Source: Syncephalis fuscata S228 (Eukaryota; Fungi; Zoopagomycota). From it: a DNA stretch of 64,000 bases. The notes beneath the pieces are model-generated. The model saw nothing but the letters and a program-made list of their open reading frames with translations. It did not search any database and was not told the origin of the DNA. The position numbers and the translations under genes were made by a program. This document shows, piece after piece, positions 27,260-43,465 of this stretch; positions within the stretch are counted from its first letter, which is position 1; each line of letters opens with the position of its first letter. The stretch is taken from the NCBI GenBank assembly GCA_025786725.1, contig JAHLTZ010000027.1, positions 62,001 to 126,000 of the forward strand. Reading direction: 5' to 3'.

Positions 27260-29395
27260 CTAAGTAGCAGCTTCGATTTTAAGCCGTTTAGCACTACCAC
27301 TTCTTTCAGGTTTTCGCGTAGACTTCAACAAATTTCGTAGCTTATTTAGCTTAACAACTGAAAGGCTACGTGTTTGGCCTTTAAGACCAAAATAGGAAAC
27401 GCTTAAGGTTTGTCCTGGTACTATTTTTCCATTAGCATTAATCAGATCGAGTTGAATGTATCCAGAGTAAACCCAATTCTCAATAAAAGGCACATTTTCT
27501 GGTGGTGTAATATCAATACTTAGTGTAGTAGATGCTTGGGCTGGCACAGTGATTGCTTTGCTAAATTTAACACTGGCCGGTGCATCACGATGTTCTGGCG
27601 GGTAAATGGGCTGGCCTCGAGCATCATATCCTCGGACAGTTGCCGCAGGTAAATGTGAAACTCGGTAAACTTTGACTGTGGAACCAAAATTACTGATTTC
27701 CAATCTCTTGTTAATGGTCGCAGCTACACCTGTAGGATATTCGCCAAGGAGTAGCATCGATGGGTTAACGCGTGTTGTCTCGGCAATGGCCCGTTGAATA
27801 TTGAATAGTCCCGAGCCTTGTTGGGCCACCGAACTAATAAGCGGCGAAAAGGGTGATCGTACAGGCTTGGATGTAGTTTGAAGTAGAGATCGAAGAGCAT
27901 GAATATCTTTTTGAACGCCGTGTTTTTCGAAATAAAGAGCTACGGCAGCGGCCATATAAGGAGCAGCAAATGAAGTACCACTTATATGATTGAATGTGGC
28001 AATTTTTTTACCATTCATAGTAGTACTTAATAATGGCGAGCTAGGTGCAGTAATGTCTGCATTGCTTGTAAGCCATGGTGTAGGACCCCAAGCAGCACGT
28101 GTATCTCCGTAGAATTCATCGGCTGTAGGTTCAACGCCAAATTGATTTAATAGATTAAGTTCAACTTTGGGCTTGCGATCCAACATCTGTCTAATATATT
28201 GAATATTTGGTATGGCCAGTTCAAAAAATGGCACTGAACAAGAAAAAGTGTCATAAATTTGACCATACTGAGCAGCCGATGCAATAACACCAAGAGCATT
28301 AGCTTGCTTAGCCTTTTGGATTAGCTGATCAATTTTGCAACTATTTGAGGGCGATACAACATAGCTGCCCATTACGTTATTTGTAATATCGCATGAAGCC
28401 ATTGCCTTTTCGTCAGTTAGAGATGTAGCCAGAGTAGCATAGATTTTTCGCCGATTGCTTTGTGGCATAGGACAAACAATATTATACGGGATACGAAGCG
28501 CTTTAGGATCGCCAGTAATTGAAAACCAATACGATGAAGGATCGGGCATCTCAGCTCCTGATACCGAAATAACGGAAGGTGCTATACCAGGTGCACGTGC
28601 CTGCCACATCGATTGCTCAACAAGGTTGCCAGCGGATACAATAACCGTTAAGCCTTTTATAGCAGCAGATTGAGCATAGACTACCGGCATGGTTACTGAT
28701 TCATGAGTATTGATGGACATTGATAGAAGCACAATATGCATTCCATCATCTGCGGCAACATCTAGGGCTAGTTTTATTAGACCTTCGTTTGCTGCAGACT
28801 CATCACAGCCTGCTATGCGATATGCGCCAAGTGTAGCTTTAGGAGCAATACCCACAAATGTATTTGTTTGGGCACCGATGATGCCCGCTACTTTAGTACC
28901 GTGACCATAACAATCCATTGGATCACCTCGATCCTTTCGGCTATGAATATCGGCTATAGAACGACCGTAAAGATTCATGCCAACAGCAACTCGACACTCT
29001 TTGCCAAAACAGCCACCAAGAGCTGGATGCAAGTAATCGATACCGCTATCAATTATACCAATGTTAATACCTTGACCAGTTAATTTTGCTTCTTTTGCCG
29101 CCTTTATTCCAGTAGCCTCGTATCCAGTTACTGGTTTAACAAGTCTTTTATTATTGTTTATTTTTACCATGGGATCCAAATTTTTTATAACACTGAGTTC
29201 AAAAGTCGAATCGCTATTTGTTTTGAGACGTCGTACAAGTTTAACGTAATCTAATGATGCCTGAGCCGTTTGATTGCTACTTGAATTTAACTTAGCAATA
29301 GAATCAGGTGACAAAGGTAGTGCATCAACATAAATCGTAGTATACTTTGTGCTAGCAGCCAGCAGCAAAGTAGCATAGAGTAGTACAAGTCGCAT
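27260..29395 (-). CDS. Secreted subtilisin-like S8 serine protease (Vpr-type, with PA-like insert and Fn3-like C-terminal domain)
   Basis: Intronless ORF with a signal peptide (MRLVLLYATLLLAAS), Asp (IIDSGIDYLHPALGG), His (GHGTKVAG), oxyanion Asn (SAGN), Ser (SGTSFAAP), SVAQQGSG and a C-terminal YSGYI motif. Confidence 0.92.
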   Translation of the reverse strand: MRLVLLYATLLLAASTKYTTIYVDALPLSPDSIAKLNSSSNQTAQASLDYVKLVRRLKTNSDSTFELSVIKNLDPMVKINNNKRLVKPVTGYEATGIKAAKEAKLTGQGINIGIIDSGIDYLHPALGGCFGKECRVAVGMNLYGRSIADIHSRKDRGDPMDCYGHGTKVAGIIGAQTNTFVGIAPKATLGAYRIAGCDESAANEGLIKLALDVAADDGMHIVLLSMSINTHESVTMPVVYAQSAAIKGLTVIVSAGNLVEQSMWQARAPGIAPSVISVSGAEMPDPSSYWFSITGDPKALRIPYNIVCPMPQSNRRKIYATLATSLTDEKAMASCDITNNVMGSYVVSPSNSCKIDQLIQKAKQANALGVIASAAQYGQIYDTFSCSVPFFELAIPNIQYIRQMLDRKPKVELNLLNQFGVEPTADEFYGDTRAAWGPTPWLTSNADITAPSSPLLSTTMNGKKIATFNHISGTSFAAPYMAAAVALYFEKHGVQKDIHALRSLLQTTSKPVRSPFSPLISSVAQQGSGLFNIQRAIAETTRVNPSMLLLGEYPTGVAATINKRLEISNFGSTVKVYRVSHLPAATVRGYDARGQPIYPPEHRDAPASVKFSKAITVPAQASTTLSIDITPPENVPFIENWVYSGYIQLDLINANGKIVPGQTLSVSYFGLKGQTRSLSVVKLNKLRNLLKSTRKPERSGSAKRLKIEAAT

Positions 29396-30086
29396 TGTCA
29401 ACAGCAATAGTAAAGTTTTCTAAGATTTCTATACGATGAATAAAAGAAATAAATGAATAGCAAATAACTTACATGTAAAAACAAACCATTCTTATATATT
29501 ACAAATTTATTAGCACATGAGTAACTGAAACAAAATTAAAACGCTGAATCTTTCCAAATTTGTAGTTGGCAAATAAAACAAAAATTGGTGTACCCAAATA
29601 GAGAATGACACTATACTAAATACAGTAATACCTCAATGTGAATGGATATAATAGGATGATGTTGGATTGTTTATTGATAACATCTAAACGTAATTTTGAA
29701 ACAACTTTTTACAACACCGCTAAGCGTAACATTTACTATTTGCGGTATAACGTTATTACGATTATTGTTTTGATATTAGTGTAATTTTGTCAAATAATTA
29801 CAACTAATGATTATCTACTATTTAATATGTAGTATTGGCACAAGGATGATTTACCAATATGTTACAATTATTATAGATAGGTTATTGAACATTTGTTATT
29901 AAATGATGTTTTACGACACCTACATAAAACGTTTAATCACATCATTTATTATTTTTTCTCTCTCTCTCTTTCTTTCTCTTTATTTAATAATAGTAGTTTA
30001 TTCATTTCCGTTATTAAGTGACAATATGTTAATTCACTATTACGTGGTCTATTATTATTGCAACTCTACTATTATTACATAACATG

Positions 30087-39867: not shown

Positions 39868-39999
39868 TTATGAAGGACGAGTAAAAGTACGATGAACAGG
39901 AGGAGCACGACGAGCTAGGACTGGACTGGCATCCACCATAGATGTGGTGGCCACAAGAGCCACAAGGACGGTGCAGACGGCGGCAATGGAAAGCTTCAT
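39868..39999 (-). CDS. Small secreted peptide precursor, 43 aa, intronless (not in ORF track)
   Basis: MKLSIAAVCTVLVALVATTSMVDA-SPVLARR-APPVHRTFTRPS*: hydrophobic signal ending VDA|SP, a short pro-piece, a dibasic RR site and a 12-aa tail. It is a GC-rich island in AT-rich DNA, with a TATA-like TTTAAATA at ~40131-40138 and a paralog at 43186-43279. Confidence 0.8.
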   Translation of the reverse strand: MKLSIAAVCTVLVALVATTSMVDASPVLARRAPPVHRTFTRPS

Positions 40000-40170: not shown

Positions 40171-40285
40171 CATGTATGTTATGGTCTGGCCATATGCACC
40201 ATGTTTGCTATAGTCTAGACTATATGCATCATATTTTTATGGTCTAGACTATATGTAACACATCTGCTATGATTTGGCCCATAAC
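40171..40285. repeat. Four degenerate ~29-bp tandem units with palindromic core TAGTCTAGACTA, upstream of the peptide gene
   Basis: catgtatgttatggtctggccatatgcac / catgtttgctatagtctagactatatgcat / catatttttatggtctagactatatgtaa / cacatctgctatgatttggcccata. Confidence 0.7.
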
Positions 40286-42712
40286 TCCTGTGCTATACAA
40301 AAGGCGAGATTTACTTATTGCATGCACAAGTTCACTTTTCATATCCAATGACTTTATAAGCCCTTTGCTGTACCAATTGCATCTATTATAGTGTAGTAAA
40401 GGGCATAGGCCTAATGCTGCTTCTATTTTCTGCTTCTCGGTCTAGTAGATCTTATCCCTTAATTCTTTAATCTAAGTTCCTTTTGCATTTTACTTGCTAC
40501 TTTTTATTTTCTTCATTTCAAGTCTCAGGCCTATGTTGGCAGATTAGCATCCTGCATTGCGCATCTGTAAAAATACTCATTTTATTCTTCTAACTGATAC
40601 ATATGTTTATCTGTTGATTTAAATTTGTTCTTAATTATTTAAAAACATATTATTATTGGAATGTAAACCTTTCTATCAAAAGGAACTGGCAGGTCTAGCT
40701 TGTTGGTTTTTTTAAATTTTCTTTTATCTTAAAGTTGTTTTATTTCGCAATTCATTCAATTTCAGGCCTTTGCTCATATTGAGGTAGAGTGGTTGGTTAG
40801 AAACCTTTTCTTCTCTATTCTTCCTTTCCTCACTGCCCTTAGTGGCATATTATTCGTTTCAATGTTTATTATTGCCTTATGATGAAAACATAAAAATAAA
40901 ACTTTCTATTAATAGATAATAATACTAGTTTATTGTTTCTATTTATTTGCTTGACAATTATTCGCATAGTGATTAAACTGCTACGGCCCATATTGTTTTA
41001 CACCAAGTAGTAACAATATTGATGCACAAATAGATTTAATAGCCTAGTTTACTATAATCAATATGGTTTATTATAAGTTTACACACCGAGATGGCTAAGA
41101 AATCAAGGCAGACTTCACCGGAACAACAATACTGTTGCTACCTTAATATTATAGATAGGGTTTTGTAAGAATGCGAATAAGAAACACACCGAGTGATTGA
41201 ATGGTCTATTAAAATCGCATATGATTGGTCGCAAAAATAATATATATATATCATATATCAATATTAATTACCAATAACAGGCAGCTATTAAAATGCTACA
41301 ACTGGTAACTACTTATTATTTGTAAGTATATGAGCTGATAAACTGCGTTAATGATGAAATATTACAAAACATTCAAGTTCTATTATTAGTCATTTTACTA
41401 TAAAATGATAGTTTTATTCAATATCAATAAAAAGATAATCGGCGTTTGATCACATATTATTTCTGTTTAGTATCCTACAAGTTATTCAGCTTATTATTTC
41501 TATTTTGTATATATTATTGAAATAATGATACGATCATATGGAAGCATAACAATAATAGCTAACTTATCCGTTTTATCTGAAAAATACTAAGTAGTCAGTA
41601 TATAAAATTTTCTTCTTCTAGTTGCAAATTAAAGCTTTAAAAGATCTTTGTCATTACTAATAGATTGTAATCAATAAAGCATAGAATAATATAAACTCTA
41701 AAAGTGAGCAAATGAAAGTTTATGAATACTAACAGTAAAACTATAGTTTACATGATAGCAAGATGGACATATTTGATGGAGATTTACAATAAATAAAGCT
41801 AGAAATAAACAACTAGCTTTATTAATAGCGTATAATCAGTAGATCATAGAACGATATAGAGTAAAATGAATATACGATAAACACCTGATGTATAACTGAA
41901 ATAGATGAAGAAATAATGATATTATATACGTAGAAAAGCTATGAGTAAACTAATTATTACCAAGTAAAAATTATTAAGCTGCCATAGGATAGCAATATTT
42001 TTATGTAACTTTTACTGCTTAGTTACAATGCTTTTATAAAGAAAAACCTTCAGCAACACATTGTAACAATGATAATTGGTTGTTTATTATTGTGTCGTAA
42101 ACACCAACGATTCCATTATACCATGTCCACTAGCATCAACGATTCTGTTTTTAACTTGTTTATACTTGGTTATAACACTCAGATAGCTATAAAAGCACTT
42201 ATAATTATTTTATAATAAGCAATATGCATCATTCTTATACATTACGCTTTGCTCAATATTCATGTGATAATGAACTTTATTTAGTATAATCGCTCATACC
42301 AACTAATTATTGACTTGGTACATATTATTACAATAATAATAATAATAATAATAACAGTAGTGTCAATATATCTTAATAACTGATGTGGCACACTTGTATA
42401 AGTTTAGTGTAATATGCTAGTTAAATTTTGCTAATTGCTAAATACAAAGCAAACATGAACAAAGATATAGCGATTTAATTATATACAATTAAAATAAAAC
42501 CATATGTTTATTACTACAAGCTTGCATAATTGAATAAACACAACTAAATGCAGTATTGTTGGTAATACAATACAGTTATTGGTTAAAACCTAATATGGAA
42601 ATAGACTAAGTAACAATTATCAACTGATCTTGTTTCGTGCCAAATATATATTTAAAGTATATTAAGCTAAAAGCTTAATTATCTGCCAATGTTGTTATCA
42701 TAGACGCATTGC

Positions 42713-43279
42713 TTATTCTATATTTGTAAAGCATACATGCCGTATAATTAATGTCTATGTTATGTTATATAATGCTACTTACGTCCTATTAATACAAATT
42801 ATCAAACACACAAAGTGCGTGATATATGTTTAGTAAATAGTTGATAAATATACAATAGCACTTACTGGCTATTAATAAAAATTATTGAATACACGCACTA
42901 TATGGCATATGCTTAATGAATGGCTAATAATTATACAATGCAACTTACTACCTATTAATACAAGTTATTTAACCAACGCACTGTACGCATATGGTTAGTG
43001 CACAGTTGGTGAATATACAATGACACTTACCAGCTATTAATACAGTTATTAGATGCACACAAAAGCAACACATAATTAATACATAGATGTTGATATACAA
43101 TACACCTTACGCTTTAATAACGTTAATTTGTTATGGAAATAATATTCAATTAATTGGGTAACTAGTTATTGCAACTACAGCATACCACGACGGACTATAA
43201 CTGGACTGGCACCCACCATGGATGTGGTGGTTACAAAAGCCACGATGGTGGTGCAGAAGACGGCAATAGAAAGCTTTAT
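42713..43279 (-). CDS. Micro-exon secreted-peptide gene (paralog of 39868-39999; start codon reads ATA, so possibly a pseudogene)
   Basis: Exon 1 43186-43279 = (I)KLSIAVFCTTIVAFVTTTSMVGASPVIVRR+G with donor GTATGC. Micro-exons: C (43111), CTG (43031-43033), GTA (42949-42951), CCA (42866-42868), GAC (42783-42785). The last exon starts at 42717 (AA TAA) and its stop aligns with the paralog's stop and 3' UTR. Confidence 0.7.
42770..43125 (-). repeat. Tandem array of ~80-83-bp intron + micro-exon units
   Basis: Minus-strand junction motif TATTAATAG-NNN-GTAAGT recurs with exons at 42783, 42866, 42949 and 43031, plus a degenerate unit at 43111 (periods 83, 83, 82, 80). Branch-point-like TACTAAA (~42829-42835) and CACTAAC (~42994-43000) sit at the same offset. 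Confidence 0.88.
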
Positions 43280-43465
43280 GTTGATATTGATTTGTTAAAA
43301 CAAACAAGCAGAACCAACAAGAGAGTGTAGTTGGCAGGGAGTAGATAGTGGTGATTATTTGACATAAAGTAGAATTTGTTGATAATACTACTAGCTAGCT
43401 GTGTGTATTTTGCCAGCTATTTAAGTCTATGTTCATTCCGAAATATAAAGAATGTATCCTATGGA

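Follow-up and report, generated by a model that had tools for sequence, protein, structure and literature searches.

A family of putative secreted-peptide genes in the mycoparasite Syncephalis fuscata whose mature parts appear to be encoded by tandem arrays of three-nucleotide exons

The window considered here is a 64,000-nucleotide stretch of DNA from Syncephalis fuscata S228 (contig JAHLTZ010000027.1, positions 62,001–126,000). S. fuscata is placed as a zoopagalean fungus and lives as a parasite of other fungi; people, animals and crops are not its hosts. The minus strand of the window carries a signal-peptide exon followed by a short tandem array, in which introns are separated by single triplets, and also an intronless paralog of this gene. 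The features are:

43280..43430, minus strand: 5′ flank with the TATA-like TTAAATAG near 43424, homologous to flanks of the paralog and other members
43186..43279, minus strand: exon 1, 94 nt (31 codons plus G), with signal peptide, dibasic RR and one G
43034..43185, minus strand: first intron, 152 nt at present, containing the decayed first unit
43109..43116, minus strand: decayed unit, triplet AGC at 43113-43111, donor GTAAGG, without a YAG acceptor
43031..43033, minus strand: 3-nt exon CTG (motif scan)
42949..42951, minus strand: 3-nt exon GTA (motif scan)
42866..42868, minus strand: 3-nt exon CCA (motif scan)
42783..42785, minus strand: 3-nt exon GAC (motif scan)
42786..43030, minus strand: three homologous introns, 79–80 nt each (sequence comparison)
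42718..42782, minus strand: last intron, 65 nt, final TAG acceptor at 42720-42718
42713..42717, minus strand: last coding exon, two bases (AA) plus TAA, the stop at 42715-42713
42490..42712, minus strand: 3′ UTR/flank, with 87% identity to the same region behind the paralog
39868..39999, minus strand: intronless paralog, intact ATG, 43 aa (homology to the window array gene)

The first-pass annotation of this DNA described a signal exon ending SPVIVRR-G before a GTATGC donor, an array of five units, and a final AG followed by AA and a TAA in line with the stop of the intronless paralog. The exon is confirmed on the minus strand (43279-43186), with its donor at 43185, and so is the ending; the 3′ flanks align too. 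Four of the five units (CTG, GTA, CCA and GAC) are intact, but what had been read as a ‘lone C’ is better read as the AGC unit, whose TAG acceptor is lost. A branch-like CTRAY motif, also part of that description, lies ~44 nt before the AG in two of the four window units, and this is the commonest position family-wide. The intact units match TAATAG-NNN-GTAAGT with a period of 82–83 bp; dinucleotide shuffles yield a mean of 0.08 and a maximum of 1 such match versus the four present. Tandem Repeats Finder also reports an 83-bp unit. The three homologous introns are 72–74% identical to one another, and 63–70% identical to units of other family genes.

The window array gene and its intronless paralog share both flanks as well as exon 1 and the position of the stop, and the mature part of the paralog consists of 12 residues behind RR. 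The GenBank annotation shows no gene at either copy. A 29-bp tandem repeat of ~3 copies is found at 40171-40255, just upstream of the promoter region of the paralog. The ankyrin open reading frame that adjoins the locus matches a protein of Syncephalis fuscata at 100% identity. It and the ARP5-like gene flank the locus and are 4.7 kb apart in the window, versus ~200 bp in Thamnocephalis, where the interval between the two genes contains no array. Elsewhere in the window, positions 27260-29407 (minus strand) form one long open reading frame, which on its motifs alone would encode a secreted subtilisin-like protease.

The window copy is probably a young pseudogene that sits beside an intact intronless sister. 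Its start codon is ATA, as in the badly decayed array copy at locus L109, and there is no upstream in-frame ATG. The first acceptor is lost, which leaves only four working units. The signal exon matches 21 of 31 consensus residues, the lowest value in the family (23–28 in other members), and departs from the family at three of 13 invariant residues (M1, V8 and D23). When the triplets are compared with the peptide of the window's own paralog by local alignment and exon shuffles, no significant match is found. Retention of four units and both terminal splice sites, together with an open frame that stops in line with the paralog, is what might be expected of a functional gene for a very short peptide, with a non-AUG start, an assembly error or an allele accounting for the ATA; given the defects listed, this is unlikely. 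Since the copy is probably decaying, its five-residue product may never be made.

Relatives were sought with the natural paralog as query, and then with an alignment of natural proteins; nine loci were then examined. A word-indexed search with the paralog gave no homologues, but an exhaustive search recovered them. An exact look-up of three open reading frames from the window gave no match. There are 15 relatives, all from S. fuscata, plus one cluster member, and the homologue searches found no member outside this species (six of six and 15 of 15 homologues were S. fuscata). Nor did any family member come up from transcript assemblies, the queries being exon 1, intronless genes and deposited proteins. 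The first-pass annotation staked its reading on there being a relative with an intact ATG and the same array, and five were found. They have the same signal exon and an ~81-bp unit repeated 17–40 times, with 29 internal exons at L110, 40 at L111, 17 at L112, 30 at L116 and 35 at L117. The nine loci also contain five intronless genes (at L109, L113 and L115, and two at L114). The two intronless genes at L114 (8958-9217 and 10230-10490) are 1.2 kb apart and have 3′ flanks that are 99% identical, but their mature peptides are very different. A seventh array gene, heavily decayed and with an ATA start, is located at L109:1890-2893 (minus strand) and served as a control for splice-site decay.

The exon lists of six scored arrays were curated by hand. 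Internal exons are 3 nt long in 147 of 155 cases, and the others measure 6, 6, 9, 12, 15, 21 and 33 nt, with one of 2 nt. Thus the mature coding sequence lies entirely in exons of 33 nt or less. All but one (154 of 155) are multiples of three, and these are all in phase 1. The single 2-nt exon, at L111:9806, is in a G homopolymer and may represent an assembly error or a true frameshift. Array introns are 54–86 nt in length, save those in which an insertion or a lost unit is contained. The acceptor is either TAG or CAG, the donor GTAAGT occurs 119 times, and one consensus extends across 134 aligned introns, with the commonest CTRAY motif ~45 nt upstream of the acceptor. In every array gene exon 1 stops one base into a codon. 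The last coding exon consists of two bases plus TAA in all arrays except L110, and this ending is common to the window gene, L111, L112, L116, L117 and the intronless copies. An exon therefore completes one codon with two bases and opens the following codon with its third; the mature part is encoded one triplet per exon, as the first-pass annotation claimed, but in phase 1 and not as whole codons. It should be pointed out that blemishes exist: L110 is without the usual last acceptor, L111 has the 2-nt exon, and L116 has one unit without AG. The ATG-intact arrays at L112 and L117 are flawless.

By inspection, a hydrophobic leader of 24 residues is kept in all members. The family precursors have RR at residues 30–31, which is probably a Kex2 cleavage site, and L112 and L116 have a second dibasic site, KR. 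Pfam, PDB sequence and fold searches with the family peptides gave no match, and a single-sequence model of the intronless protein P0022 is helical but of low confidence (pLDDT 59). From the lifestyle of the fungus and the architecture of the precursors, the most likely targets of the peptides are the fungal host or microbes that compete with the parasite. The explanation favored here as a whole, in which we place considerable confidence, is that of a family lineage-specific to Syncephalis fuscata that encodes a hypervariable, often cysteine-rich peptide after the signal and RR.

Several types of evidence bear on how the triplets are used. Phase-1 readings were computed from genomic DNA, with the 2-nt exon read as X and the ATA start left unchanged. 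In genomic order, the exon junctions create a single stop, right at the end of L111, whereas exon-order shuffles give 7.1 (P=0.0015), and the readings contain 16 Cys codons versus 6.6 when shuffled. The L110 reading is collinear with the intronless gene at L109 (z 11.9) over C-K-C-x-D-x-D-G-x-C-T-S-C. That of L117 matches the intronless L114a/P0022 over 36 columns (z 17.8) and the intronless L113 with z 10.0. None of 2000 exon shuffles reached the collinearity scores of L110 and L117. Where array and intronless genes have identical residues, 13 of 50 are specified by different synonymous codons. In L109 relative to L110, and in L113 and L114a relative to L117, every intron has been lost precisely and the exon content is still collinear. 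The second dibasic KR of L112 and L116 is spelled across exon junctions. When only the similarity of flanks was used to locate units, the two splice dinucleotides were found retained at 34 of 35 positions in L117 and at 27 of 29 in L110, where the introns are only 65% alike, versus one of 10 in the decayed array.

Models deposited in GenBank provide a further, indirect line of evidence. Protein P0015 is compatible with exactly one canonical splice structure, and this contains two 3-nt exons. The partial protein P0009 has no possible canonical splice structure. Its simplest structure uses the predicted 9- and 33-nt exons followed by a non-canonical intron, and it stops at a donor; the non-canonical intron ends 6 nt before the true AG, which is the length of the two intervening triplets. 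The P0009 model looks like a transcript forced onto the genome, although the origin of the GenBank models (RNA-based or ab initio) is not stated. All six deposited models (P0009, P0010, P0011, P0015, P0017 and P0018) disagree with the inferred structure through read-through into introns, truncation or a spurious intron.

On the basis of the stop depletion, the collinear paralogs, the KR spelled across junctions, the retained splice sites and the P0015 and P0009 models, splicing of the triplets completely and in genomic order is well supported, at the level of sequence comparison. The main product would be an mRNA spliced in full. The mature peptide would be read from tandem units of a ~78-nt intron and a 3-nt exon in phase 1, closed by the exon of two nucleotides plus TAA. 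The predicted precursor consists of signal peptide, RR, sometimes a short pro-piece with a KR end, and the hypervariable peptide. Introns of this length could be defined individually, and their removal probably proceeds 5′ to 3′, each triplet joining the growing upstream exon.

Two other readings of the arrays have to be weighed. The arrays are known here from genomic DNA, and the window copy has no ATG and no gene called by GenBank, as might be the case if the arrays were non-coding satellites, or if the whole array were one intron and the triplets incidental. Yet peptide homology that is collinear with intronless paralogs, fewer stops and more cysteines than in shuffled order, and splice sites kept unlike those of the decayed control make this highly improbable. 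More serious is the proposal that arrays are kept because skipped subsets of triplets yield peptide variants from each gene. The first-pass annotation suggested this by analogy with the schistosome micro-exon genes (MEGs), which operate in this way (PMC4015677, PMC4350168). With 154 of 155 exons symmetric the frame survives any skip, ~95% of skip junctions are free of stops, and in a gene with 35 exons slight leakiness would make variants unavoidable. However, skips that make stops are not depleted: they amount to 122 of 2209 pairs (5.5%), and to seven of 143 single skips (4.9%), versus a random expectation of ~4.8%. The full in-order reading matches the paralogs, its cysteine spacing is that of the intronless genes, and the comparable captured intronless copies are near full length. 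Diversification by skipping is therefore rather unlikely as the reason for the arrays, and this part of the earlier claim is not supported so far, although skipping is compatible with full in-order splicing and could coexist with it as a second layer.

The history of the family was approached with a tree of flanks and signal exon (12 rows, unrooted and with no outgroup, the decayed L109 copy left out). Array and intronless genes are interleaved, with at least four changes between the two states on well-supported branches, and monophyly of the intronless copies is rejected. The window gene and its paralog form one sister pair (100/100), and L110 and L109 form another (100/100). Tree and collinearity together point to repeated intron loss through fully spliced mRNA. 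As for direction, L117 has two duplicated blocks of three units, in which the matching introns are reciprocal best matches (0.90, 0.80; 0.90, 0.92). Both blocks are present in intronless relatives, which suggests that the array form came first and favors later intron loss via spliced mRNA. A caveat is that conversion tracts with a constant offset could give the appearance of duplicated blocks. The intronless copies retain the 5′ flank of the family, and cDNA-templated conversion of a duplicate fits this better than plain retroposition.

Within arrays, neighboring units can be 100% identical, triplet included, as seen in L112 and L111, which likewise favors the array form as the earlier one. 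A different pattern, only partly accounted for, is found among pairs of L111 units whose flanks are 85% or more identical: triplet identity is random at each of the three positions (0.34, 0.25 and 0.23), and the boundary at the exon is sharp. Positive selection by itself does not explain this triplet diversity, as the synonymous position is equally divergent. The preferred reading of the L111 pattern is that conversion tracts are confined to introns and filtered by selection on the peptide. In the favored explanation the array evolves like a minisatellite: as identical neighbors and block duplications show, units or blocks are duplicated or deleted, and residues are gained or lost in frame. 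The introns are homogenised whereas the triplets remain different, probably through conversion limited to introns, and spliced mRNA would be copied back into DNA again and again to give intronless paralogs.

Random triplets within near-identical flanks, as in L111, are also expected if introns were copied into existing coding sequence, i.e. if the intronless genes are the older form and every codon was later followed by the insertion of a mobile introner-like intron. But 3-nt spacing and a single phase are required by unit duplication and not by insertion, and identical neighboring units and duplicated blocks bring their introns along. In addition, in the 213 kb of S. fuscata DNA scanned, the array unit was found only in arrays of the family; matches outside the known arrays comprise one more decayed family gene and three single stray matches. 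The flank tree would also call for separate invasions in three clades or more. Such an invasion is thus improbable, and duplication of units followed by repeated intron loss is preferred.

Some array introns contain a ~420-bp SINE-like element, found in four copies:

L111:7495-7944: ~420-bp element in an array intron
L111:9080-9562: ~420-bp element in an array intron
L112:11233-11648: ~420-bp element in an array intron
L116:10726-11225: ~420-bp element in an array intron

The copies are 79–86% identical and have a T-rich end, and the one in L116 has a 16-nt target duplication. By eye, a Pol III box-like head can be seen on the other strand. The insertion point is ~10–25 nt past the donor of array units, and no copy was found outside array introns in 213 kb of S. 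fuscata DNA; perhaps the element is targeted to the array unit. The presence of these copies in introns, the T-rich end and the target duplication suggest that reverse-transcribed elements reach array loci. A 901-nt intron at L111:6175-7075 has a different, longer insertion, which starts with the same T-rich end. ARAGORN and Rfam searches of the intron insertions gave no match.

A pattern scan of metagenomes returned 105 stretches; contigs were selected by motif, such that the counts reflect array purity and not frequency. Most of these were set aside because their triplet does not vary, the stretches being CRISPR-like or simple repeats. In three sets the triplets do vary, and the introns of these sets look unrelated to those of Syncephalis:

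L010, L047, L054, L084 and 18 other WNFZ/WNGA/WNGF/Ga0137367 contigs: 3-nt exon arrays with a ~98-bp period
L039:6072-7190, also L026 and L092: ascomycete-like signal-peptide gene with a phase-0 triplet array, 72-bp period
L066:900-3185, minus strand: eukaryotic contig with a phase-0 triplet array, 70-bp period

The 22 contigs of the first set are AT-rich, have TPR and kinase open reading frames, and in our judgement are probably from Glomeromycotina-like (arbuscular mycorrhizal) fungi. They contain 243 strand-specific 3-nt units versus at most five of any other length. The arrays adjoin the kinase and TPR frames, and their phase-1 reading is N/D/Y-rich; in L010 the last unit enters the kinase frame in phase 1. 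Reverse-transcriptase-like remnants are found alongside the array in L026 and L092. The L066 array runs on into older, diverged introns that are still separated by 3-nt exons.

Unrelated arrays of putative 3-nt exons have thus turned up in contigs of at least three other eukaryotes. This raises the tentative possibility that the triplet-per-exon array is a recurring, overlooked eukaryotic way to build and rapidly rewrite interaction proteins residue by residue. It would have arisen independently in Syncephalis (secreted peptides, phase 1), in a Glomeromycotina-like fungus (also phase 1, beside kinase and TPR genes), in an ascomycete (secreted, phase 0) and in one more eukaryote. If so, unit duplication and intron-limited conversion would edit genes codon by codon and cause no frameshifts. 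Leaky skipping may contribute further variants, and successful versions would be fixed as intronless genes by reverse transcription. Standard annotation would miss such arrays.

The Syncephalis arrays are of interest in several respects. With dozens of 3-nt exons in succession, an entire coding region is at the lower limit of exon size and pushes that limit. Such arrays are a natural system in which to study the order of intron removal, and to ask if intron definition is enough by itself. Their intronless sisters can be looked at as fossil cDNAs in which mRNA-mediated intron loss is directly traceable. The family is missing or mis-modelled in GenBank, and other secreted peptides and protein tails of this class may be unannotated. 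As products of a mycoparasite, the mature peptides are new candidates for a role in host interaction or as antimicrobials.

Among known systems, the schistosome MEGs come closest in plan. They are secreted, multi-copy and fast-evolving, with a signal-peptide exon and small symmetric exons (PMC4015677, PMC4350168, PMC10526429). Their exons are mostly 15 bp in length (range 6–81, given as 3–81 in the abstract), there are 10–20 per gene with introns of 0.1–5 kb, and variation arises by exon skipping (PMC10526429). The Syncephalis family too has a parasite's signal exon and symmetric micro-exons that make up the mature part. However, 95% of its exons are 3 nt, a gene can have as many as 40 of them, and homologous tandem copies of ~78 nt serve as introns. 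In addition, the evidence in Syncephalis favors full in-order splicing, and intronless copies recur there. No homology to flatworm MEG families was found, all homologues detected being from S. fuscata. MEGs are reported only from flatworms, and the likeness is therefore one of convergence.

Fungal introner-like elements and stwintrons also involve many near-identical short introns and very tight splice-site spacing. The Syncephalis copies differ in being restricted to one family and in being consecutive and not nested; the free phase and spacing of introners is absent, the arrays being fixed at phase 1 and 3-nt spacing. A conserved signal and dibasic site with a variable mature peptide are properties shared with the KEX2-processed fungal peptide precursors (KEPs) and with small cysteine-rich peptides, and even numbers of cysteines in L110, L111 and L117 are as in small cysteine-rich secreted peptides. 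KEPs repeat peptide cores inside one reading frame (PMC9769878); the Syncephalis repeat is the intron, and the peptide, as seen in the array readings, is single and non-repetitive.

No description of triplet-per-exon arrays or of the Syncephalis family was found in the searchable literature, which leaves most subscription journals outside its reach. Isolated microexons are known from fungi, as in P450 genes and in Coprinopsis cinerea, where long reads reveal 27 exons of 3 nt in 26 genes (PMC12230235). The likeness is that fungal spliceosomes cope with internal exons of 1–3 nt. The difference is one of scale, with about one such exon per gene in those cases but dozens in succession in Syncephalis, where they encompass the whole mature peptide. 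Single 3-nt exons are thus already established in fungi, and the Syncephalis arrays represent a new and extreme form.
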